Shown: positions 2 through 63,402 of the stretch, in pieces
How positions within the stretch are numbered: position 1 is the first letter of the stretch
Layout: each line of letters starts with the position of its first letter
Source: Obrimoposthia wandeli
Taxonomy: Eukaryota
Assembly (NCBI GenBank): GCA_977020255.1
Contig: CDROCS010001143.1
Span: 186,001 to 250,000 of the forward strand
Reading direction: 5' to 3'
DNA length: 64,000 bases
The notes under the pieces: generated by a model
The model's input: the letters and a program-made list of their open reading frames with translations, nothing else
The model's database searches: none
What the model was told of the DNA's origin: nothing
Position numbers and translations under genes: made by a program

Positions 2-700
2 AAAATTCGAGCCTCTTTAGTGTGGATGTCAGAAACTGCGTTAAACATAGGTCAAACTTATGACATTAAACTATTAACGGGAAGAGTGGCGGGCGCTATT
101 ACCAATATAGTACATAAAACTGATATCAATACACTAGCTCATATTGCAGATTACAAACTCGCTTTAAATGAAACCGCACTGTGCGAAATACAATTTGAAC
201 GCCCTATTCTTGCAGACGCATATCGTCAATTACCAGCAACCGGCTCATTCATTATTATTGATAGGTTTAGTAATGCAACCATTGCAGCGGGTATGATTGA
301 ATCTGCAATACAACACAAAAGTGCACTGGATAAAATCGTTGCACAATCACAGTTCACTCATGTGCAAAAAGCACAGCGCTTTGGACAAAATCCTAGCATA
401 ATTTCTTTTAAAGCGGATAACCTGCAAAATATTGCCAAAGCTATTTATTCATTAGAGTGCAAATTAATTAACGCAGGCAGAGCAGTAGCAACACTTACCC
501 AATCGTCGATTAAACATAGTAAGTCAGCTATTAGCATCTCAGATGCCGCTAGTGTGTTAATAGAATCAGGCTTAATTGTTTTGTGTGAAGATGCTGCTAA
601 TTTACGCAGTGATGTTTGTTTTGATTTATCTGATGAACAGATAGATACACAAAAAATAGACATGCTGTTAAAAGCACTTACTGATCAGAATATTATTTAA
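2..700 (+). CDS. cysN: Sulfate adenylyltransferase large subunit, C-terminal part (5'-truncated by window edge), with degenerate APS-kinase-like tail
   Basis: Frame is open from base 2. LNET..CEI...PI..D.Y....TGSFIIIDR.SNATIAAGMI matches the CysN C-terminal barrel. Confidence 0.85.
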   Translation, partial: KIRASLVWMSETALNIGQTYDIKLLTGRVAGAITNIVHKTDINTLAHIADYKLALNETALCEIQFERPILADAYRQLPATGSFIIIDRFSNATIAAGMIESAIQHKSALDKIVAQSQFTHVQKAQRFGQNPSIISFKADNLQNIAKAIYSLECKLINAGRAVATLTQSSIKHSKSAISISDAASVLIESGLIVLCEDAANLRSDVCFDLSDEQIDTQKIDMLLKALTDQNII

Positions 701-6971: not shown

Positions 6972-7676
6972 ATGCCCACCAATTATAAAGAGCTAACTTT
7001 CAACGGCTTGTGGAAGAACAATCCCGCGCTAGTGCAACTACTCGGCCTTTGTCCTCTATTAGCTGTTACCGCCTCAGTGGTAAATGCTCTGAGCTTAGGT
7101 GTGGCCAGCATGCTAGTACTCATCGGTTCTAACTTTGCAGTATCGGTGTTTCGTAACTTTATTCCAAGTGCTGTGCGCTTGCCCATTTATGTCATGATCA
7201 TTGCAGCTTTAGTCACTTCCATTGAGCTAGCAATGCAAGCATTAACTTATGAACTGTATTTAATACTCGGTATTTTCATTCCATTAATAGTGACTAACTG
7301 CATTATTATGGGTCGCGCTGAAGCGTTTGCGGCTAAAAATCATGTATTAGCAGCACTTTACGATGGTTTTATAATGGGATTAGGATTCACTCTCGTTTTG
7401 GCTCTTTTGGGTGCTATACGTGAAATTTTAGGCACCGGTATTCTATTCGCTGATATGGACTTGCTCTTCGGTGATTTTGCCAGTAGCTGGGAATGGGTGA
7501 TCTTTGAAGACTATCCTGGCTTTTTATTTGCTATTTTACCGCCAGGCGCTTTTGTTGGACTCGGGATTATTATTGCTTTAAAAAACTTTTTCGATCAACG
7601 TAATATTAGTAAAAGCAGCTCTAGAGAAAGCACCGAACAGCCACTTATAATCTCGCCAATTAACAACAAAGCATGA
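6972..7676 (+). CDS. rsxE: Rnf/Rsx subunit E
   Basis: [25 protein letters not shown] and LPPGAF motifs. Confidence 0.97.
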
Positions 7677-7849
7677 ACTCTAATTTAAACTTAAAGCAGC
7701 ACACAAAGAGCTAAGTATCAATAACATAAAAAAGTTGATACGCGACAATCAACCGCCCATTTTTTAAGATAAGTCAGTTGATAAATTAGCTTTTTCTGCT
7801 CTTTTTGTCTAAACTAATCCTCAACATTAATTAATTATAAGAATATAAC

Positions 7850-8875
7850 TTGAAGCCATCATTTAAAATTACGATTTGTGATGATTCCCGCTTAGCCCAG
7901 CGGCAATTATCACAGGCAATTAAAGATTGGGACGCCCAAGTTACCTTCGCCGATAACGGTATTGAAGCCATTACGGCTATTAAGAATAATCAAGCTGACT
8001 TATTATTTCTAGATTTGAATATGCCCGTCATGAATGGCTATCAAGTTTTAGAACAAATTCGAGAAGAAGATCTGCCCACCCTCGTCATTGTTGTCTCTGG
8101 TGATATTCAAAATAAAGCTCTAATAAAAGTAACAGATCTTGGGGCTATCGCCTTCATCACCAAGCCTATTCGCCTTAAAGACTTGAACGCTATTGTTGAT
8201 GAGTTTGGGCTCTCTAGCCAGATAAGTATTAAAGCAAGCACTGACGACAATAACAACGATACAGTAACAAAATTCAATATCCGTCCATCGCAGGAAGAAC
8301 GCTTTCAAGAAACCGCTAATATAGCGATGGGTAAAACCGCGAAAAGGCTATCTGAGTTATTCGATATTTTTATTAATCTTTCAGTGCCTAAAGTAAATCT
8401 GATTACCTATAGCGAACTTTATATGGTAATTAAAGACAGTGGCAGCAAGGATTTTACCGCTACAATAAGCCAAGGCTTTGTTGCCAGTGGTATTAGCGGC
8501 GAATCTATTTTGATTGTTGATAAATCAGGCTTGCCTTATATTTCAAAAATATTAGGTTTTTCCTCTGAAATAGATGCAGAGCTAGAGAAAGATATTTTAG
8601 TTTATCTAGCCGGCTTGCTAAGTAGCTCCTTCATTGAAACATATTTCCAGCAAATAGGCATTCAACACATCAACCAAGGCATCCCCTCCTTTATCGATTT
8701 CAAAGGCCAATTAGATCACTTGCTCGAAGAAAGCGCGCAGCAACAAATACTCTCAATTGAAGTGACTTATAGCATTCCTGAATATGACATTCACTGCGAT
8801 TTATTACTAGCTTTTACACTCGATTCAATTGAACCAATGAGTCAACGTTCGGAGCTGTTTTCATGGACACTTTAA
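7850..8875 (+). CDS. Response regulator with C-terminal CheC-like domain
   Basis: REC motifs CDDS, LDLNMP, VSG and KP. C-terminal QETANIAMGKTAKRLSELF..FINLSVP resembles a CheC helix motif. Confidence 0.85.
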   Translation: MKPSFKITICDDSRLAQRQLSQAIKDWDAQVTFADNGIEAITAIKNNQADLLFLDLNMPVMNGYQVLEQIREEDLPTLVIVVSGDIQNKALIKVTDLGAIAFITKPIRLKDLNAIVDEFGLSSQISIKASTDDNNNDTVTKFNIRPSQEERFQETANIAMGKTAKRLSELFDIFINLSVPKVNLITYSELYMVIKDSGSKDFTATISQGFVASGISGESILIVDKSGLPYISKILGFSSEIDAELEKDILVYLAGLLSSSFIETYFQQIGIQHINQGIPSFIDFKGQLDHLLEESAQQQILSIEVTYSIPEYDIHCDLLLAFTLDSIEPMSQRSELFSWTL

Positions 8876-55412: not shown

Positions 55413-56240
55413 TTATGCACCTTTAGGTGTAGCTATGCGCTGATCAATATCATAGGTTGATCCACTACTAAGAATATGTAGTTTTATCCCAATAAGTGTC
55501 ACGGCTTGCTTACGAGATGCCTCAGCCATAGAGCTGTGCGTTATCTCAGATGGATCAATAACCGTTATTCCGCCTGAACCTACCACTTCTAATACATTAT
55601 CGGGCCCAATAAAAGCGGCTGTATCTTCATCAATCCCAAGACCTGAAACAAACGGATTATAAGACACCGCAGAGAGTAATCGACCTAAACGATTACGCTG
55701 ACTAAAATGCTGGTCGAGTATCAGTTTATTAATCAGCCCCATACCTGGCGCAAAAGTCACTCCATCTTCATTAGGTAATGAGCCTGTTGCTCCACCCGCA
55801 ATCATATGTGCAGGCATAATGGCAGCACCTGCTGATGTACCTGCGACATGCACCCCCGCAGCATTCGCGCGGCGAATGATCTGAGCAATCGGTGTGCCGC
55901 CTAAAATAGTAGATAAACGTAACTGATTACCACCTGTAATAAAGATGCCCGTCGCTTGCTCTAATAATGCTATATGTGCAACATCATTTGCAGCTTCACG
56001 ATTGTCTATATTTAATGACAGAGCATTCTTAACTCCAAGCTTTGCAAAAACTTGTTCGTAATTTTCACCAGTATCAGCCAATTTCGAGGCAGTGGGTATA
56101 ATCACAATAAATGCATTTTCTGCTCCGCATAATTTTACAAACTTTTGCAAAATCACTGGATTTTTTTCGCGCTCTTCAGCACCACCAATAGGAATAACAT
56201 AACCGCGTTGCTCACCATTGGCAACTTTAGCTGGACACAT
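55413..56240 (-). CDS. cphB: Cyanophycinase (S51), intracellular type
   Basis: IPIGGAE, FITGGNQLRL, GTSAGA (catalytic Ser), DQHFSQRNRLGRL and GIDEDTA motifs; no signal peptide. Confidence 0.93.
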   Translation of the reverse strand: MCPAKVANGEQRGYVIPIGGAEEREKNPVILQKFVKLCGAENAFIVIIPTASKLADTGENYEQVFAKLGVKNALSLNIDNREAANDVAHIALLEQATGIFITGGNQLRLSTILGGTPIAQIIRRANAAGVHVAGTSAGAAIMPAHMIAGGATGSLPNEDGVTFAPGMGLINKLILDQHFSQRNRLGRLLSAVSYNPFVSGLGIDEDTAAFIGPDNVLEVVGSGGITVIDPSEITHSSMAEASRKQAVTLIGIKLHILSSGSTYDIDQRIATPKGA

Positions 56241-56969
56241 ACTAACCTCTAATTTTGTTCTTTTAAATTTACCGCTGATTATAGAAATCACGAATAACAA
56301 CTTTTAATAGCCTTGCTATCAGAAATATACATTGACTATGTTTAAACACTTACCCGTTAACTCTTTTTATCTAAAAAATCCATACAGAACTATCTTTTAT
56401 AACAAATCTAATTAAAGATTCATTATCATCCAGCATTCATATTGGGAAAGAGTGCACATCTAATTTTGGAATACTATCCTGATTGGATATCACAGGTGAA
56501 AGTGGTAAATTGAAACTATAGTTTAGTACAACACAGTAAATGATTGCTATCAATTCACCATCTTAAAACTGCGCATCACTATATAACCTATTCAACGCAC
56601 AAGATAGCTAAAGCTTAGTTATGCACTCAATAGCCAAGCCTTAAATAGCTAATAAATTAAACCTCTCATAATTTAAAACTTATTCTTGATCTTTATTGTG
56701 CATACTGGTTTATAGAGTTATAAAAGATTAAATAGCAGGAAAACAACTATATTGAAACTATTTTCAGTGCACTTAATCTTTAAACTAAAAATTATTGATC
56801 TTAATACCATTTACTCAGCTTTAAGTCGAAAAGAAGCAATACTATTTATTACAGTACCCGTAAATTGTCACTGTTAATCTTCGACTAGCTACACATTATC
56901 CTTTTACAGCGTCAATTTTATTTAAAAGAAAATTGATATAGCGTCATTCTAATAATAAAAAGGTGATCT

Positions 56970-59774
56970 ATGAAAATCATTTCCTCCAATGTCTATGTCG
57001 GCCCTAACCAATACGCACACTTCCCTGTAATTCGCCATATTATCGATATTGGTATTTTAGAGAACTATCCCTCTGTTAAGCTTGGTACTGATTTTACCCA
57101 AAATTTAACTAAACTACTGCCAGGCTTATCTGAGCACGGTTGCTCTTATCGTACTGAAGGGGGGTTTCTACGCCGCCTCACTGAAGACGAAGGCACATGG
57201 ATGGGCCATATTTGGGAGCATGTTGTGCTTGAACTACAATCGATGGCAGGGGCTGATGTTACTTTTGGCCGAACCCGCAGTACTGATACTGTTGGTCAAT
57301 ACACAATGGTCTTTGAATATAAACAGCGCGATGTAGGGTTAGAAGCCGCCAAGCTTGCAAGACAATTATTAATCTCACTCATAGATCCCCTACTAGTACC
57401 CCAGCTAAGCACGCCTATCGATGAGGATTTCAACTTTGAAGAATCTCTATTCAGTTTTATACGTTTTGCCCAGCGTAAAGAATTAGGCCCAAGTACTGCC
57501 TCTATCGTTAATGCAGCCCATGAGCGCGGCATCCCTTGGCAACGTTTGAATAACTATAGTTTGATCCAGTTCGGTCAAGGCAAATACCAAGAGCGCATTC
57601 AAGCCACTATTACCAGCCATACTAATCACATCGCCGTTGAACTGTCTTGTGATAAGGAAGATACCCATCAATTACTGAATAATTTAGGTCTGCCGGTTCC
57701 TCAACAACGTATGGTGCATTCAGAGAAAGAAGCGATACGCGCCGCTCATCGAATTGGTTTCCCAGTGGTGCTTAAACCCTTGAACGCCAATCATGGTCGC
57801 GGCGTCTCTATTAATTTATTAGATGATGAACAAGTTAAAGCAGCCTTCGAACATGCACAAGAGCACAGCACCAGCCGCGCTATCTTAGTAGAGTCTTTCC
57901 TGCAGGGATTAGATCACCGTATGTTGGTGGTCAATAACGAGCTAGTGGCCGTTGCAAAGCGTGTTCCCGGCCATGTCAAAGGTGATGGCGCAAGTAGTGT
58001 TACTCAATTAATCGATATTGTGAACAGCGATCCAAGACGCGGCATAGGCCACGCTAAAGTGTTGACCCGTTTAGAGCTAGATCATCAAGCTAAAAGATTA
58101 CTCAGCGAAGCGAATTACACTGCTGATACCATTTTGGTAAAAGACGAAATATTTTACTTGCGCTCTACTGCCAATCTTTCCACTGGCGGCACCGCTATAG
58201 ATATGACTGATTCTGTGCACCCAGATAACATCGTCATGGCAGAACGAGCCATTAGAGCGATAGGTTTAGATGTCGGTGGCGTTGATTTTTTAACCAGTGA
58301 TATTACTCAATCCTACAAAGAAGTGGGCGGTGGCATTGTAGAAGTTAACGCAGCGCCTGGCTTTAGAATGCACGTTGCCCCAAGTGAAGGCAAACCACGC
58401 GACGTTGCCGGCAAAGTGATGGATATGCTGTTTCCAGAGGGCGCACCGAGCCGTATTCCTATCGCAGCGATTACCGGCACGAACGGTAAGACAACCACCT
58501 CACGTATGTTATCGCACATCTTAAAAGCCGCCGGTCACATTGTCGGTATGACCTCCACAGATGGTGTCTACATTGATGGTCATTTATCCGTTAAAGGGGA
58601 TATGACAGGCCCTGTTTCATCACAAATTGTATTGCGAGACCCTTGTGTTGATATCGCCGTATTAGAAACCGCTCGCGGTGGTATTGTGCGCGCAGGTTTA
58701 GGTTATCAAGAGACCGACGTATCCGCTGTTTTAAATGTCGCAGAAGATCACTTAGGCATGCGTGGTGTCGATAGAATCGAGCAACTAGCAGAGATCAAAC
58801 GTATTGTCGTAGAAGTAGCAAAAGATACTGCGGTGCTCAATGCAGATGATAATTTATGCCTACAGATGGCTGATTACACTCAAGCTAAGCATCTATGCTA
58901 CGTCACTATGAATTCTGCTCACGGCTTAGTGCGCGAGCATATACGCTCAGGTGGTCGAGCAGTGGTACTAGAAGCGGGCATCAATGGCGAAATGATCACT
59001 ATTTACGATAAAGGTGCTCATATACCTTTGCTATGGACCCATTTAATTCCAGCAACCCTTGAAGGCAAAGCCACACACAACGTGCAAAATGCCATGTTTG
59101 CCGCGGCACTAGCTTTTAGCTTACATAAATCGCTGGAAGATATTCGCCACGGATTGCGTACTTTTGCCACTACCTTCTTCCAAGCACCAGGGAGAATGAA
59201 TGTTTATGATGAGTATGATTTCAGAGTCATTTTGGATTATGCACACAACGCAGATGGCATTCAAAAAATGAGTGAGCTCGCGTCTAAGCTTGAAACTCAA
59301 GGACGGCGCATAGCGGTTATCGCAGGCCCTGGGGATCGTCGTGATAAGGACCTAGTCAATATTGCAAAAGCCGCTGCTGGACATTTTGATTACTATATTT
59401 GTAAAGCCGATGATAACCGCCGTGGGCGTACCGATAGTGAAGTACCTGATATCATTGCAGCTGCCCTACTTGCACAAGGCATTGATCAGAGCAATATAAT
59501 TGTCATAAGCGATGAGCAAAAAGCCATTAGCCATGGTTTAGAAAGTGCTCAAAAAGGTGATTTATTAATGATCTTTGGCGACGCTATTACTCGCTGCTGG
59601 AAACAAATTATTCACTTCAACGACACCTCTGAAAAGTCTGAATCATTTACTGTTAGCGCTGTTCAAGAGTCCGTTTCAGAAATCGATACCTTTGTGTTAG
59701 AAGAAGGCATGATGATTGCTGAAGATGAGCGCGGTGTGCGCATCGTAAATATCCAATCTGAAGAGAGTGATTAG
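56970..59774 (+). CDS. cphA: Cyanophycin synthetase (N + ATP-grasp + Mur-ligase domains)
   Basis: GPN.Y start, HGCS...GGF..R...GTWMGHIWEH, GPST, KPLNANHGRGVS, EVNAAPGFRMH, TGTNGKTTT, ETARGG and DYAHN motifs. Confidence 0.96.
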   Translation: MKIISSNVYVGPNQYAHFPVIRHIIDIGILENYPSVKLGTDFTQNLTKLLPGLSEHGCSYRTEGGFLRRLTEDEGTWMGHIWEHVVLELQSMAGADVTFGRTRSTDTVGQYTMVFEYKQRDVGLEAAKLARQLLISLIDPLLVPQLSTPIDEDFNFEESLFSFIRFAQRKELGPSTASIVNAAHERGIPWQRLNNYSLIQFGQGKYQERIQATITSHTNHIAVELSCDKEDTHQLLNNLGLPVPQQRMVHSEKEAIRAAHRIGFPVVLKPLNANHGRGVSINLLDDEQVKAAFEHAQEHSTSRAILVESFLQGLDHRMLVVNNELVAVAKRVPGHVKGDGASSVTQLIDIVNSDPRRGIGHAKVLTRLELDHQAKRLLSEANYTADTILVKDEIFYLRSTANLSTGGTAIDMTDSVHPDNIVMAERAIRAIGLDVGGVDFLTSDITQSYKEVGGGIVEVNAAPGFRMHVAPSEGKPRDVAGKVMDMLFPEGAPSRIPIAAITGTNGKTTTSRMLSHILKAAGHIVGMTSTDGVYIDGHLSVKGDMTGPVSSQIVLRDPCVDIAVLETARGGIVRAGLGYQETDVSAVLNVAEDHLGMRGVDRIEQLAEIKRIVVEVAKDTAVLNADDNLCLQMADYTQAKHLCYVTMNSAHGLVREHIRSGGRAVVLEAGINGEMITIYDKGAHIPLLWTHLIPATLEGKATHNVQNAMFAAALAFSLHKSLEDIRHGLRTFATTFFQAPGRMNVYDEYDFRVILDYAHNADGIQKMSELASKLETQGRRIAVIAGPGDRRDKDLVNIAKAAAGHFDYYICKADDNRRGRTDSEVPDIIAAALLAQGIDQSNIIVISDEQKAISHGLESAQKGDLLMIFGDAITRCWKQIIHFNDTSEKSESFTVSAVQESVSEIDTFVLEEGMMIAEDERGVRIVNIQSEESD

Positions 59775-59934
59775 GAGGTTATCCGAGAACAGACTGATCT
59801 ACTGCGAACCAATCTATTTGGCCAAATTTAACGCTCATTTTCGTTAATTAGAACAACTATTCGCCTCAAATGACCCTTTAATTTGACTAAAACAGCCTGG
59901 TTCTCGCTACAATCGCAGTTCTCGGACAGCCTCC
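59774..59934. mobile_element. MITE-like element, family B, copy 2 (intact ends)
   Basis: Imperfect TIRs GGAGGTTATCCGAGAAC / GTTCTCGGACAGCCTCC flanked by TA on both sides; homologous copy at 41348-41497. Confidence 0.8.
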
Positions 59935-59957: not shown

Positions 59958-61685
59958 ATGCAACCAATACAATTAATTTTAGATGACTGTCGACGCTTAA
60001 CTGGCAAGAATTTATTATGGGATGCACCTGGCGCTATTATCGATGCTTATGTCACTGGCATTGATAAAAACGAAGTAATCAAATGCTGGCAAGCCAACGT
60101 AACAAGCCTTTTACAGGCAGTTGGCTGGCAAGAACAACAATGTTGCTCTCGCATTTTTGATACCGGTGTCAACTTAGCTATTAGTGCTCCCTTAGATGGT
60201 TTATACGCTGCCACTACGTTGAACGAATTCGCGTGGAAAATGCTAGAGCAACACTTTGAAATTTCAAATGATGAAAGTGAAGCACCACTGGTGTTCGAGC
60301 AGTTGGTAGCAACTATCAAGCAAGAAATTGATGATGAGCGCAACCCGCGCTTACTGGAACTAATCGCACAAGCTGATTCCCAACAAGTACCTTGGCTAGT
60401 GGATGATGATGAATTTTCACTAGGCTTTGGTGCTAGCACCAAGATTTGGCCGATCACTGAGTTACCTAACCCTAGTCGAGTTGATTGGGCTAACTACACA
60501 AGAGTACCTTGTGTGTATGTTACTGGCACCAATGGTAAATCGACCACTGTTCGTTTGTTCTCGCATGTTTTAACCACCAGCGGACTTTGTTGCGGTGTCA
60601 CTTCAACAGATTTTATCAGAGTGGGTAAAAAGATAGTCGATCACGGTGATTACTCAGGCCCAAGCGGTGCGCGTATGTTATTACGCGAAAAGAGCCTACA
60701 AGCGGCAGTATTGGAAGTCGCCCGTGGCGGATTACTACGTCGTGGCTTACCAATAGAGCAAGTCGATGCCGCTATTATCACCAATGTGGCAGAAGATCAC
60801 TTAGGCCAATACGGCATCAATGATTTGGCAGGCCTAGTGCAAACCAAATTTATGGTCGCTAAAGGCTTAAGCGATAACGCACCTTTAATTCTTAATGCTG
60901 ATGATTCAGGCATAGTGGCTTATGTACAAGCAAACCGCCAACAATTAACCAAAAATATTCACTGGTTTGCGCTGTTAAAAGATAACCCTATGATCCAACA
61001 ATGCCTAAAGCAAACTATTCCTGTTAGCTATACTGAGCAAGGCGAATTCATTTATCACGACGGTAATCAACCGCAAGCATTATTAAAAGTAGCTGATGTG
61101 CCGATGACCTTTGGCGGTGCCGCTGTACACAATGTTCATAACGCCTTAGGGTGTATTGCTTTAAGTAAATCGCTAGCTATTAGCAATGAGCACATAGTAC
61201 AAGCACTTGAAAGTTTTAAGAGTGACAACGAGGATAACCCTGGGCGCGGTAATGTTTTTCTCATTAATGAAGCGACCGTCATAGTTGATTTCGCACATAA
61301 TGTGCACAGCATGCAAGCGATGCAAAAAATGCTTAATACCATGCCTGCTAAGCGCAAAACGTTGATGCTAGGACATGCGGGAGATAGGAGCGATGCTGAA
61401 ATAACCGCTTTAACCGAATGCATTTTAGCGATAGCACCTGATCAGCTAATGATAGTGGAAAACCCCGACTATTTACGCGGACGAGCACTAGGTGATATTC
61501 CCGCTATTATTGCACAGTGTGCACTAGCCAAGAATATGCGTGAAGATCAAATATTCTATGCAGATGATCCTTTAAACGGCGTTAAAAAAATAATAGAAAA
61601 TATTCAAGCAGATGATTTAGTTTTTCTTATGGTATTGAGCCAAAGAGACTCTATTGTCCCTTTATTGCAAGCTCAATCAAATTAG
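59958..61685 (+). CDS. CphA-like Mur-ligase protein lacking the ATP-grasp core
   Basis: RRLTGKNLLW N-terminus and VPW..SLGFG block, followed directly by TGTNGKSTT, EVARGG, NVAEDHLG, LNADD, PGRGN, DFAHN and GDRSD. Confidence 0.85.
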   Translation: MQPIQLILDDCRRLTGKNLLWDAPGAIIDAYVTGIDKNEVIKCWQANVTSLLQAVGWQEQQCCSRIFDTGVNLAISAPLDGLYAATTLNEFAWKMLEQHFEISNDESEAPLVFEQLVATIKQEIDDERNPRLLELIAQADSQQVPWLVDDDEFSLGFGASTKIWPITELPNPSRVDWANYTRVPCVYVTGTNGKSTTVRLFSHVLTTSGLCCGVTSTDFIRVGKKIVDHGDYSGPSGARMLLREKSLQAAVLEVARGGLLRRGLPIEQVDAAIITNVAEDHLGQYGINDLAGLVQTKFMVAKGLSDNAPLILNADDSGIVAYVQANRQQLTKNIHWFALLKDNPMIQQCLKQTIPVSYTEQGEFIYHDGNQPQALLKVADVPMTFGGAAVHNVHNALGCIALSKSLAISNEHIVQALESFKSDNEDNPGRGNVFLINEATVIVDFAHNVHSMQAMQKMLNTMPAKRKTLMLGHAGDRSDAEITALTECILAIAPDQLMIVENPDYLRGRALGDIPAIIAQCALAKNMREDQIFYADDPLNGVKKIIENIQADDLVFLMVLSQRDSIVPLLQAQSN

Positions 61686-61752: not shown

Positions 61753-63402
61753 TTAACTAGTACAGGTATTTTCAGGCAATGCAAACCAACGCAACTCTTC
61801 TGCCGCGGCACTTAGCTTTAGTGGCTCTGAAATATTATTAGCTTGTGCTGCCATTAATATCTGCTGCGCTTGCACTAGATAAGTGGTTAAATCATTACTG
61901 CTAACACTTTGGGGCGCTCCCTTAGATAACACTGCAGGATCCAACAAATCATCTAGTGTTAAAGTACTAACAGTACCTCCACCTACATATTCCCAAGTAC
62001 CTAGCTTTTGATTGAATTGGTAACTCGCCAGTAAACGCCAGCCATGTTCAGCAACCAAAGTTAAAGCACCTATAATATATTCGAATGTTTGCTCATCAAT
62101 AAAATAGTTAAAGTTCAAGCGTGTCCAACCCGGTCTTAGCACCATAAAACCTTCGTGCAACTGCCCTTCTATTGCCAAGCTATCTGCAATTGATAAGTCC
62201 AATAACTCATGCCCATAAGGTCCTGCACACGAGCAACCACCACGCGCTTGGATACCAAAAACATCATTGAGTAACGCCACTACAAAACCGTAGTGTAGTA
62301 CTGAATTGTTATGTTTAATATTAAATGACAATATCGATAAACGTTTAGCGTTTGTGCCGCCTAATATTTCAAAATTATCTAATTTAGATAACTGCTGCAT
62401 AGCGCGTTGAATGTAACCATGTTCCAACGACTCTATTTTTTCGGTGCCTATTTGTTGCTGTAAGTTAAAGACTAACCCTGCACGAATGGATTCAACAATG
62501 CTCGGTGTTCCCCCCTCCTCGCGACGCTCAATATTATCGATAAATGTATGCGTTTCTGGCGTGACGAACATTACGGTGCCACCGCCAGGTATTGCCGGAA
62601 CTGAGTTATGTAAATAGTCACCATTGACCACTAAAAGGCCTGGCGTACCTGGCCCACCAATAAATTTATGCGTCGAAATAAACACGGCATCTAGCTCATC
62701 GCCTTGCATATCTATTCCAACGTAAGGAGCAGCTGCTGCATAATCCCAGCAAGACATAGCACTGTATTTATGTAGTAAAGTTGATATTTTCTTCACATCT
62801 GTTTTGAGCCCTGTGACATTTGATGCTGCAGAAAAACTGCCGATTAACCGAACTCGATCTTGGTATTTTTGTAGCTGCTGCTCTAAATACACGGTATCTA
62901 TCATGCCCTCGGCATTTAATGGAATTGTCACCAACGTAGCGATGCTTTCGCGCCAAGGTAACTCGTTCGAATGATGCTCATAGGGGCCAATGAAAACCAC
63001 TGGCTTATCTGCTTCTTCAATTTGAGATTCAAACTTATACTGCGCATTAAGCTCTGCGGGGATGCGCATGTTCAACATATCAATCAGTTTATTAATCGCG
63101 GCGGTTGCACCTGATCCAGCAAAGATTACTTTATGCTTTTCTCCGGTGTTTAGTGCGCTGTGAATAGCAGCTCTTGCTTGTTCTCGATACTGAGTACTTT
63201 GCTTACCCGTATAAGAAGTTTCTGAATGAGTGTTAGCATAAAAAGGCAATACATGCTGACTAATCGCTTGTTCTATAAAGGTTAATGAGCGCCCTGATGC
63301 AGTGTAATCAGCATAAACCATTGGCTTACTACCAAATACAGTATTGAACAACATGCCATCACCGATGACACTTGCGCGGATTTTCTCTATAGTTACAGTC
63401 AT
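61753..63402 (-). CDS. Class V PLP enzyme (SufS/cysteine desulfurase-like, extended)
   Basis: YADYTASG, YANTH, HHSN, DYAAAAPY, STHKFIGGPG (PLP Lys), EGGTP and RGGCSCAG motifs. Confidence 0.88.
   Translation of the reverse strand: MTVTIEKIRASVIGDGMLFNTVFGSKPMVYADYTASGRSLTFIEQAISQHVLPFYANTHSETSYTGKQSTQYREQARAAIHSALNTGEKHKVIFAGSGATAAINKLIDMLNMRIPAELNAQYKFESQIEEADKPVVFIGPYEHHSNELPWRESIATLVTIPLNAEGMIDTVYLEQQLQKYQDRVRLIGSFSAASNVTGLKTDVKKISTLLHKYSAMSCWDYAAAAPYVGIDMQGDELDAVFISTHKFIGGPGTPGLLVVNGDYLHNSVPAIPGGGTVMFVTPETHTFIDNIERREEGGTPSIVESIRAGLVFNLQQQIGTEKIESLEHGYIQRAMQQLSKLDNFEILGGTNAKRLSILSFNIKHNNSVLHYGFVVALLNDVFGIQARGGCSCAGPYGHELLDLSIADSLAIEGQLHEGFMVLRPGWTRLNFNYFIDEQTFEYIIGALTLVAEHGWRLLASYQFNQKLGTWEYVGGGTVSTLTLDDLLDPAVLSKGAPQSVSSNDLTTYLVQAQQILMAAQANNISEPLKLSAAAEELRWFALPENTCTS

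Follow-up and report, generated by a model that had tools for sequence, protein, structure and literature searches.

Why a bacterium should carry, directly downstream of a complete cyanophycin synthetase gene, a second and shorter gene of the same family is the question raised by a stretch of 64,000 nucleotides (nt) from assembly GCA_977020255.1 (Obrimoposthia wandeli; contig CDROCS010001143.1, positions 186,001 to 250,000 of the forward strand), referred to hereafter as the window. The shorter gene encodes a protein of 575 amino acids (aa), for which the label CphX was coined in this analysis; a preliminary description of the same DNA, made from the letters alone, had taken it for a CphA paralogue deprived of the ATP-grasp core and a candidate side-chain ligase, an interpretation which is, overall, partly supported by the results presented here. 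The open reading frame, whose coordinates had been given exactly in that description, is preceded by an AGGAGA ribosome-binding site located 8 nt upstream of its start:

59958..61685, + strand: cphX, intact open reading frame with an ATG start, 575 aa

CphX adds a third architecture to the CphA family; it is widespread, evolves under selection and is tied to a single clade of CphA1, the full-length synthetase; its architecture, its catalytic residue set, the purifying selection acting on it and the linkage of its gene are documented in what follows, and a function is then proposed.

At the level of sequence, the relationship to CphA1 is evident over the domain resembling Mur ligases (M). The only Pfam matches of CphX are to Mur_ligase_M (PF08245, residues 188-402, 66 bits) and Mur_ligase_C (PF02875, residues 436-558, 41.5 bits), both exceeding their cut-offs; Pfam gives no match for residues 1-180, and neither an ATP-grasp match nor one to PF18921 or PF01225 anywhere in the protein. 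The best NCBIfam match is to the CphA1 model TIGR02068 (EC 6.3.2.29-30), with 339 bits, under the family cut-off of 850, and it spans only model positions 476-848, that is, the M domain; with the murE model only 92 bits are reached where 257 would be required, and the murF, murD and murC models are far under their cut-offs. In a BLASTP comparison, residues 181-558 align with residues 494-869 of the window CphA1 at 31% identity (E 2e-54), the N-terminal part giving nothing significant, and a full-length profile comparison of the two families (hhalign) reports the M domain alone. The preliminary description had, in addition, paired a segment of CphX (NPRLLELIAQ...) with the beginning of the G region of CphA1 (GPSTASIVNA...); this pairing fails in pairwise BLASTP (E = 1), but it reappears, weakly, when profiles of the N regions are compared (CphX 108-162 versus CphA1 151-208, E 5.7e-4, probability 29%), and the same register recurs in profile-versus-PDB alignments.

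The architecture emerges from structural modelling. The AlphaFold2 model of CphX, built on a family alignment of 46 sequences, has a predicted local distance difference test score (pLDDT) of 93.4 and a predicted template-modelling (TM) score of 0.90; in a Foldseek search with this model CphA1 structures come out on top, with TM scores by query of 0.81-0.83 as against 0.53 for MurE. A VIA-align superposition on the CphA1 of Synechocystis sp. UTEX2470 (SuCphA1; 7lgq, 7lgj and 7lg5) places 554-555 of the 575 residues (Z 36-38, root-mean-square deviation 3.6 Å), model residues 6..575 being matched to chain residues 1..872 with about 315 CphA1 residues left without a counterpart; Mur ligases, compared in the same way, reach Z values of 23-25. 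Residues 1-180 modelled alone (pLDDT 94.7) find only CphA1 and CphA2 chains among their top 15 PDB matches (E 1.5e-6 to 2e-3, the next match having E > 0.03), and a search independent of Foldseek returns CphA2 7ta5 as the best hit (Z 10.1, 163 residues, 3..180 versus 6..469), followed by the CphA1 of A. baylyi (AbCphA1; Z 7.7, chain range 2..483). The N-domain fold also matches, more weakly, the alpha subunit of RNA polymerase. From the matched chain ranges it is seen that CphX departs from the CphA fold after the first elements of the G-core and returns to it just before the M domain; in the model, it is a CphA1 lacking about 315 internal residues in which the arrangement of N and M domains is preserved. 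The omission of some 300 aa of ATP-grasp between an N-like domain with an early G region and the M domain, which had been read from the sequence, is thus borne out by the 554-residue alignment and by the 1-180 model, and the modelled protein can be divided as follows:

59958..60272, + strand: N domain of CphX, approximately residues 1-105, bb-a-bb-a, without the Cx19HxxEH peptidase motif

60279..60452, + strand: G-core stub, approximately residues 108-165, with an invariant DDDEFSLGxG block (D149, G156, G158)

60498..61223, + strand: M-core, residues 181-422, with the P-loop at T189-T197 (nt 60522-60548)

61224..61682, + strand: M-lid, residues 423-575, with R430, D444, H447, N448, D476, R477 and R507-G508-R509

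It is the modelled fold, and not sequence similarity, that points to a CphA-type N domain. The P-loop TGTNGKSTT does begin at T189, nucleotide 60522, as had been indicated, and, again as first described, the HxxEH motif is absent from the whole of CphX; the neighbouring CphA1 carries it at residues 80-84.

Comparison with enzymes of known structure makes the position of CphX clearer. With CphA1 (7LG5/7LGQ from Synechocystis sp. UTEX2470, 7WAC from T. erythraeum, 7LGM from A. baylyi) it shares the N fold, the early G-core, the M-core, the M-lid and the operon; unlike CphA1, it has no G-lid, no G-omega and only some 50 residues of the G-core, and its N domain has neither the Cx19HxxEH site nor sequence similarity to that of CphA1. 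Because the ATP-grasp portion is missing from the model, CphX is predicted to be unable to elongate the backbone, and synthesis of cyanophycin from scratch is not expected of a protein without the G domain. CphA2 (7TA5, 8FXH) is, like CphX, a derivative of CphA1 which has lost one ligase activity and the peptidase motif of the N domain (PMC10273328, PMC9262961); its M domain is truncated and inactive, without P-loop and lid (PMC10273328, PMC9427784). The losses are therefore reciprocal, CphA2 keeping G and CphX keeping M, which agrees with what had been suggested at the outset. CphA2 is cyanobacterial and polymerises beta-Asp-Arg, whereas CphX occurs in Gammaproteobacteria, Desulfobulbaceae and Myxococcota. 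The Mur ligases (MurC/D/E/F, pMur, FolC, MurT) have in common with CphX the central ATPase and C-terminal domains, the P-loop, the Mg-binding Glu/His, a Lys at the carbamyl-lysine position and an acyl-phosphate mechanism; unlike them, CphX has no UDP-MurNAc-binding N-terminal domain, and its genomic context is that of cyanophycin, not of the cell wall. Clustering with ordinary Mur ligases was looked for and is not seen: the 46-member CphX profile gives 270-306 bits on five solved CphA1s and at most 76 on any other Mur-type ligase, and in a phylogenetic tree the CphX sequences group in one clade (100/99) within the radiation of CphA M domains, separated by a long branch from the Mur ligases.

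The catalytic residues were compared between the 46 CphX sequences and a set of 15 CphA1 sequences, the roles being taken from PMC9427784 and transferred by alignment to TeCphA1 and SuCphA1. In TeCphA1 numbering, the P-loop lysine K499 corresponds to K194 of CphX, the Mg ligands T500, T522 and E558 to S195, T217 and E253, the adenine-stacking residues N497 and F692 to N192 and H391, and the phosphate contacts R731 and H748, both of which touch ATP in TeCphA1 (PMC9427784), to R430 and H447. The M-core catalytic set of CphX thus comprises K194, S195, T217, E253, N276, D280, H281, K297, N313, D316, H391 and N395; N276/D280/H281, K297, N313..D316 (NADD), HN..N, D476-R477 (GDR) and RGR are invariant or nearly so in the 46 CphX sequences and common to the 15 CphA1s. 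CphX thus retains the complete set of ATP/Mg catalytic residues found in the M domain of CphA1, and the Mur motifs are intact, as had been stated. The ratio of nonsynonymous to synonymous substitution rates (dN/dS) between cphX and a 93%-identical orthologue is 0.068 (0.10 for the N region, 0.056 for the M region); for the adjoining cphA1 it is 0.038. As far as can be judged from sequence, CphX is a predicted working enzyme rather than a remnant.

The two classes also differ at defined positions. Taking as class-specific those M-domain differences in which each residue is at least 90% conserved within its own class, G578, C582 and Y757 of CphA1 are replaced by P265, V269 and F445 in CphX, and R791, E849 and D871 by S478 (GDRRD versus GDRSD), P538 and L560; conserved M-domain residues specific to CphX are D228, Y232, R239, R243, R262, N427 and Y505, and the position of SuCphA1 E607 is occupied by a near-invariant Lys, K302. 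A possible correspondence of the C582/V269 position with C595 of Synechocystis CphA, a residue affecting Lys incorporation (PMC8050183), was rejected on account of a numbering mismatch. In the N region, the family has invariant R12, R13, G16, D29, W57, G70, A77, P78, D80, D149, G156 and G158, grouped in the motifs RRLTG, SAPxD and DDDEFSLGxG. In SuCphA1 the HxxEH helix consists of residues 77-92, Y14 contacts both the polymer and the M domain, and E607 contacts the polymer (PMC9262961); judging from the secondary-structure register, the CphX helix starting at P78-D80 would take the place of the HxxEH helix, and the R12-R13 loop that of Y14. A basic groove suited to binding poly-Asp, suggested by the additional conserved residues R12, R13, R65, R239, R243, R262 and K302, was considered, but the N region of the family as a whole is very acidic (mean net charge -14.7, isoelectric point 4.35), and charge is not taken to favour either view.

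The family to which the window protein belongs is large. A word-index search with CphX returned more than 5,800 matches, the top 120 of which are all 560-622 aa long, bear the names 'Mur ligase family protein', 'cyanophycin synthetase' or 'UDP-N-acetylmuramyl tripeptide synthase', and derive from sources including Colwellia, Psychromonas, Amphritea, Motiliproteus, Cocleimonas, Vibrio and Desulfobulbaceae; a deep CphX branch is found in Myxococcota (Myxococcales, Sandaracinus, Kofleriaceae). A profile of the N region, searched against 1.84 billion representatives, recovers 741 clusters at 50% identity (E <= 1e-3), or 506 at E <= 1e-10, and the complete proteins among its best 150 matches measure 556-620 aa, with two outliers of 662 and 757 aa. 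In the ESM Atlas, 83 large look-alike clusters are present, mostly from Pseudomonadota, together with one cluster of a 574-aa 'putative cyanophycin synthetase' from Actinomycetota. By sequence, a CphX-type family can therefore be defined as proteins of about 560-620 aa carrying an RR.(T)G + SAP.D + DDDEFSLG.G N region followed by a CphA-type M domain, and the window protein fits it. Per genome, cphX is rare: 5/401 sampled Gammaproteobacteria, 3/401 genomes phylum-wide and 9/401 in the nearest relative's order carry it.

The linkage of cphX to cphA1, which had been noted in the window, recurs in other genomes. In all 15 Pseudomonadota genomes with cphX (15/15), the immediate upstream neighbour, in the same orientation, is a full-length cphA1; adjacency is also found in the three loci of the present assembly (3/3) and in five of the six informative metagenome contigs, where the two genes are separated by gaps of 3-19 nt and where a complete Amidohydro_1-cphB-cphA1-cphX row is seen on two of the five linked contigs. 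A search for related loci with CphX alone matched only a 93%-identical metagenome-assembled genome (MAG). The other pairs of this 1.35-Gb, 6,912-contig assembly are located on contigs C253 (2694862-2699442) and C6791 (43434-46080), their CphX proteins being 53% and 67% identical to that of the window; with these two further pairs, the assembly must contain DNA of no fewer than three different bacteria that possess the operon. A fourth CphA, without cphX, is encoded on contig C4689. On contig C396, a 1477-aa frame at 213253-216000 contains two separate CphA G-region matches, each of 228 bits (TIGR02068 112-446 and 138-443), but none to the M domain, and could represent an amino-acid ligase with ATP-grasp units in tandem.

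In the window, the neighbourhood of cphX consists of the following features:

56970..59774, + strand: cphA1, coding for a complete cyanophycin synthetase 1 of 934 aa (N, G and M domains, HxxEH present)

55413..56300, - strand: cphB, cyanophycinase, TIGR02069 262 bits (cut-off 127), Peptidase_S51

59774..59934, strand not assigned: element of 161 bp resembling a miniature inverted-repeat transposable element (MITE), with 17-bp terminal inverted repeats

The cphA1 product exceeds the cut-off of TIGR02068 (1140 bits against 850), carries the Pfam domains Cyanophycin_syn, ATP-grasp and Mur_ligase_M/C, and scores 1069 bits with AbCphA1 (7lgm); cphB is transcribed divergently from it and has a likely ATG start at 56240, giving a protein of 275 aa. 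The MITE-like element fills precisely the interval from the cphA1 stop to the ribosome-binding site of cphX, and its insertion changes the stop from TAA to TAG; the wide spacing of the two genes in the window (183 nt, 161 of them belonging to the element) is a consequence of this insertion, the 93%-identical Oceanospirillaceae MAG having a gap of about 20 nt and no element. The element has 19 further matches in the assembly, spread over at least 10 contigs; it stands outside the cphA1-cphX system and merely separates the two genes here; no terminator-like sites were found between them. Convergent to cphX lies a gene for a 549-aa class-V aminotransferase (61753-63402, - strand), SufS-like and well below the family cut-offs, which adjoins cphX only in the closest relative and is probably outside the system.

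The CphA1s encoded next to cphX are related among themselves. Partner CphA1s are 58-76% identical to that of the window and form one clade (93/100), whereas unpartnered gammaproteobacterial CphA1s are 37-40% identical to it; the solved CphA1s of A. baylyi and T. morbirosei (1069 and 1046 bits, the alignment taking in the C-terminal tail typical of the clade) fall in the partner clade. Sister pairs within the CphX clade mirror those of the partner CphA1s, and this matching suggests that the pair of genes has been inherited or transferred as a unit; the tree contains no cyanobacterial root sequences and does not settle in which order CphX, its partner clade and the remaining CphA1s branched off. 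The HxxEH motif is present in 11 of the 12 partner CphA1s checked; the T. morbirosei enzyme (PMC9262961) and, by sequence, that of A. baylyi lack this primer-generating site. Partner-clade CphA1s also possess a C-terminal tail (59560-59771 in the window, residues ~865-934) of the form R.WKQII.(F/L)N, variable linker, DE(R/S)GVR...(E/D).D, which is present in the solved A. baylyi enzyme and absent from other gammaproteobacterial CphA1s; the tail could be a docking or regulatory peptide.

Within this framework, the chances that CphX is a trans-acting ATP-dependent ligase adding an amino acid to the side-chain carboxyls of cyanophycin seem to us about even. We infer its substrate, its product and its action in trans along the following lines. 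CphX would descend from a full-length CphA1, having lost the ATP-grasp core that elongates the backbone and kept the side-chain ligation site; its gene would be co-transcribed with those of one CphA1 clade, often together with a cyanophycinase gene and a gene of the amidohydrolase family. A cyanophycin chain would be bound between the N domain and the M-core, a free aspartate side-chain carboxyl would be phosphorylated with ATP and Mg to an acyl-phosphate of the Mur-ligase type, and the alpha-amino group of an amino acid would then be joined to the activated carboxyl. The chains would be those made by the neighbouring CphA1, on which CphX would act in trans, and the amino acid added would by default be Arg on the Asp beta-carboxyl, as in the reaction of the CphA1 M domain, or else another residue. 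In CphA1 the chain awaiting arginylation indeed lies between the N domain and the M-core, and the M-lid is required (PMC9427784); since CphX keeps exactly the N domain, the M-core and the M-lid, a stand-alone side-chain ligase is the most economical reading. The replacement of lid residues invariant in CphA1 means that the residue added may be other than Arg; that CphX adds a non-Arg residue, or uses another carboxyl to lengthen or cap the polymer, thereby producing a distinct, undescribed cyanophycin-like heteropolymer, is put forward as a tentative and less likely possibility.

Several observations weigh against a side-chain ligase acting in trans. The M-lid residues R791, E849 and D871, invariant in CphA1, are S, P and L in CphX, a hint from the alignments that the amine substrate, or its mode of binding, may differ from that of CphA1. 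CphA1, with its alternating use of the G and M sites, is not known to leave unmodified (internal) Asp behind, so that it is not apparent why a second ligase for the side chains would be needed; what is described in PMC9427784 is consistent with this, and the point bears equally on the repair of under-arginylated chains proposed in the preliminary description. Profile-profile comparison finds no similarity between residues 1-105 of CphX and CphA1, and conservation of the polymer-binding groove is suggested only by the modelled fold and the secondary-structure register. Moreover, the CphA1s of A. baylyi and T. morbirosei need no partner to produce cyanophycin in vitro (PMC9262961), and two sampled genomes have a partner-clade CphA1 (62% identical, tail present) with neither cphX nor a remnant of it downstream. 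These two CphA1s are sisters nested within the partner clade, a position which suggests a secondary loss of cphX; together with the independent activity of the same-clade enzymes, the two genomes indicate that CphX is accessory and not essential for polymer synthesis. One CphX homologue (557 aa, positions 7001-8674 of a 73.7-kb ENA metagenome scaffold) has no cphA within 7 kb and is flanked, on a contig of Bacteroidota-like character, by genes for a LexA-like repressor and for proteins with Por_Secre_tail domains (type IX secretion system); it is the only unlinked case seen. Finally, a search of sequencing runs found no RNA runs containing this stretch.

The same lid residues can be read as evidence for another chemistry on the same fold, in which CphX would activate some other carboxyl group on the chain (the alpha-carboxyl that is free on the Arg side chains, or the C-terminal alpha-carboxyl) or would attach a non-basic residue, yielding a capped, side-chain-extended or mixed-composition cyanophycin-like polymer. 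In Mur ligases such as MurD and MurE, the amino acid to be added is bound by the C-terminal domain, and it is there that the family-wide changes from GDRRD to GDRSD, of E849 to P538 and of D871 to L560 are found; the seven invariant residues peculiar to the CphX M domain and the replacement of the polymer-contacting E607 of SuCphA1 (PMC9262961) by K302 point in the same direction, and a second enzyme for an identical reaction is hard to rationalise. On the other hand, the Arg-binding residues of CphA1 are not defined in the literature examined, so that the substitutions are not assignable to specificity, both classes have the RGR and GDR motifs, and a literature search turned up no natural cyanophycin variant of this kind; this explanation is accordingly considered unlikely. 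A ligase of small substrates, making beta-Asp-Arg or short oligomers from Asp and Arg and supplying CphA1 with primers or dipeptides, would suit the very slow first steps of unprimed CphA1 synthesis (PMC9262961) and the lack of HxxEH in the CphA1s of T. morbirosei and, by sequence, A. baylyi. We regard it as very unlikely, since the window partner and nearly all the partner enzymes checked have HxxEH and should make their own primers, and since a conserved polymer-anchoring N domain and a G-core stub, both under purifying selection, would be of little use with small substrates.

Even less probable, in our opinion, is a non-catalytic or regulatory subunit that would use its M-core and G-core stub to enter oligomers of CphA1, a role for which one may cite the contacts made by the M-core with the G-cores of other protomers in CphA1 tetramers (PMC9427784), the conserved C-terminal tail of the partner clade, the strict gene order and the co-diversification of the two proteins. 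Invariance of the ATP/Mg residues across a very diverse family is unlike a scaffold, as comparison with the M domain of CphA2, which lost both P-loop and lid, makes plain; a prediction of the complex between CphX and the CphA1 G domain (residues 150-495), which bears on the hetero-oligomers proposed in the preliminary description, scored 0.01 and weighs neither way. A last reading, for which the public names 'Mur ligase family protein' and 'UDP-N-acetylmuramyl tripeptide synthase' speak, would make of CphX an ordinary peptidoglycan-type Mur ligase, or else a decaying duplicate, standing beside cphA1 by chance. This reading is already contradicted by the data and its probability is close to nil: CphX profiles give roughly 300 bits to CphA1 versus 76 or less to Mur ligases, the N-terminal domain is of the CphA instead of the Mur type, and decay is at variance with a dN/dS of 0.07, with hundreds of clusters of constant length and with the conserved linkage to cphA1.

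An enzyme of this kind does not appear to have been characterised before, as the preliminary description had also assumed: no CphA paralogue with N and M domains only was met with in full-text literature searches or in the survey PMC10206079, in a body of literature in which subscription papers are thinly covered, so that a prior mention is possible. In Tetrasphaera MAGs from activated sludge, 'two copies of cphA in series' have been reported, the shorter being less expressed (PMC10687191), and this short copy may be the same kind of gene as cphX. Genome surveys which count 'two cphA copies', or which label these genes 'cyanophycin synthetase' or 'Mur ligase', would merge distinct functions. 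Present accounts of how cyanophycin is made involve two enzymes, CphA1 and, in cyanobacteria, CphA2; CphX points to a third enzyme derived from CphA, one in which only the half responsible for side-chain ligation is left, and the gene pair to an extra, uncharacterised step in the making of this nitrogen-storage polymer. If CphX is active in trans, decoration of the side chains would be uncoupled from growth of the backbone, a situation that would help to explain the way in which the polymer is held by the N and M domains and to obtain tailored cyanophycin or poly-Asp derivatives, and the protein could serve as a stand-alone tool for decorating poly-Asp or cyanophycin.

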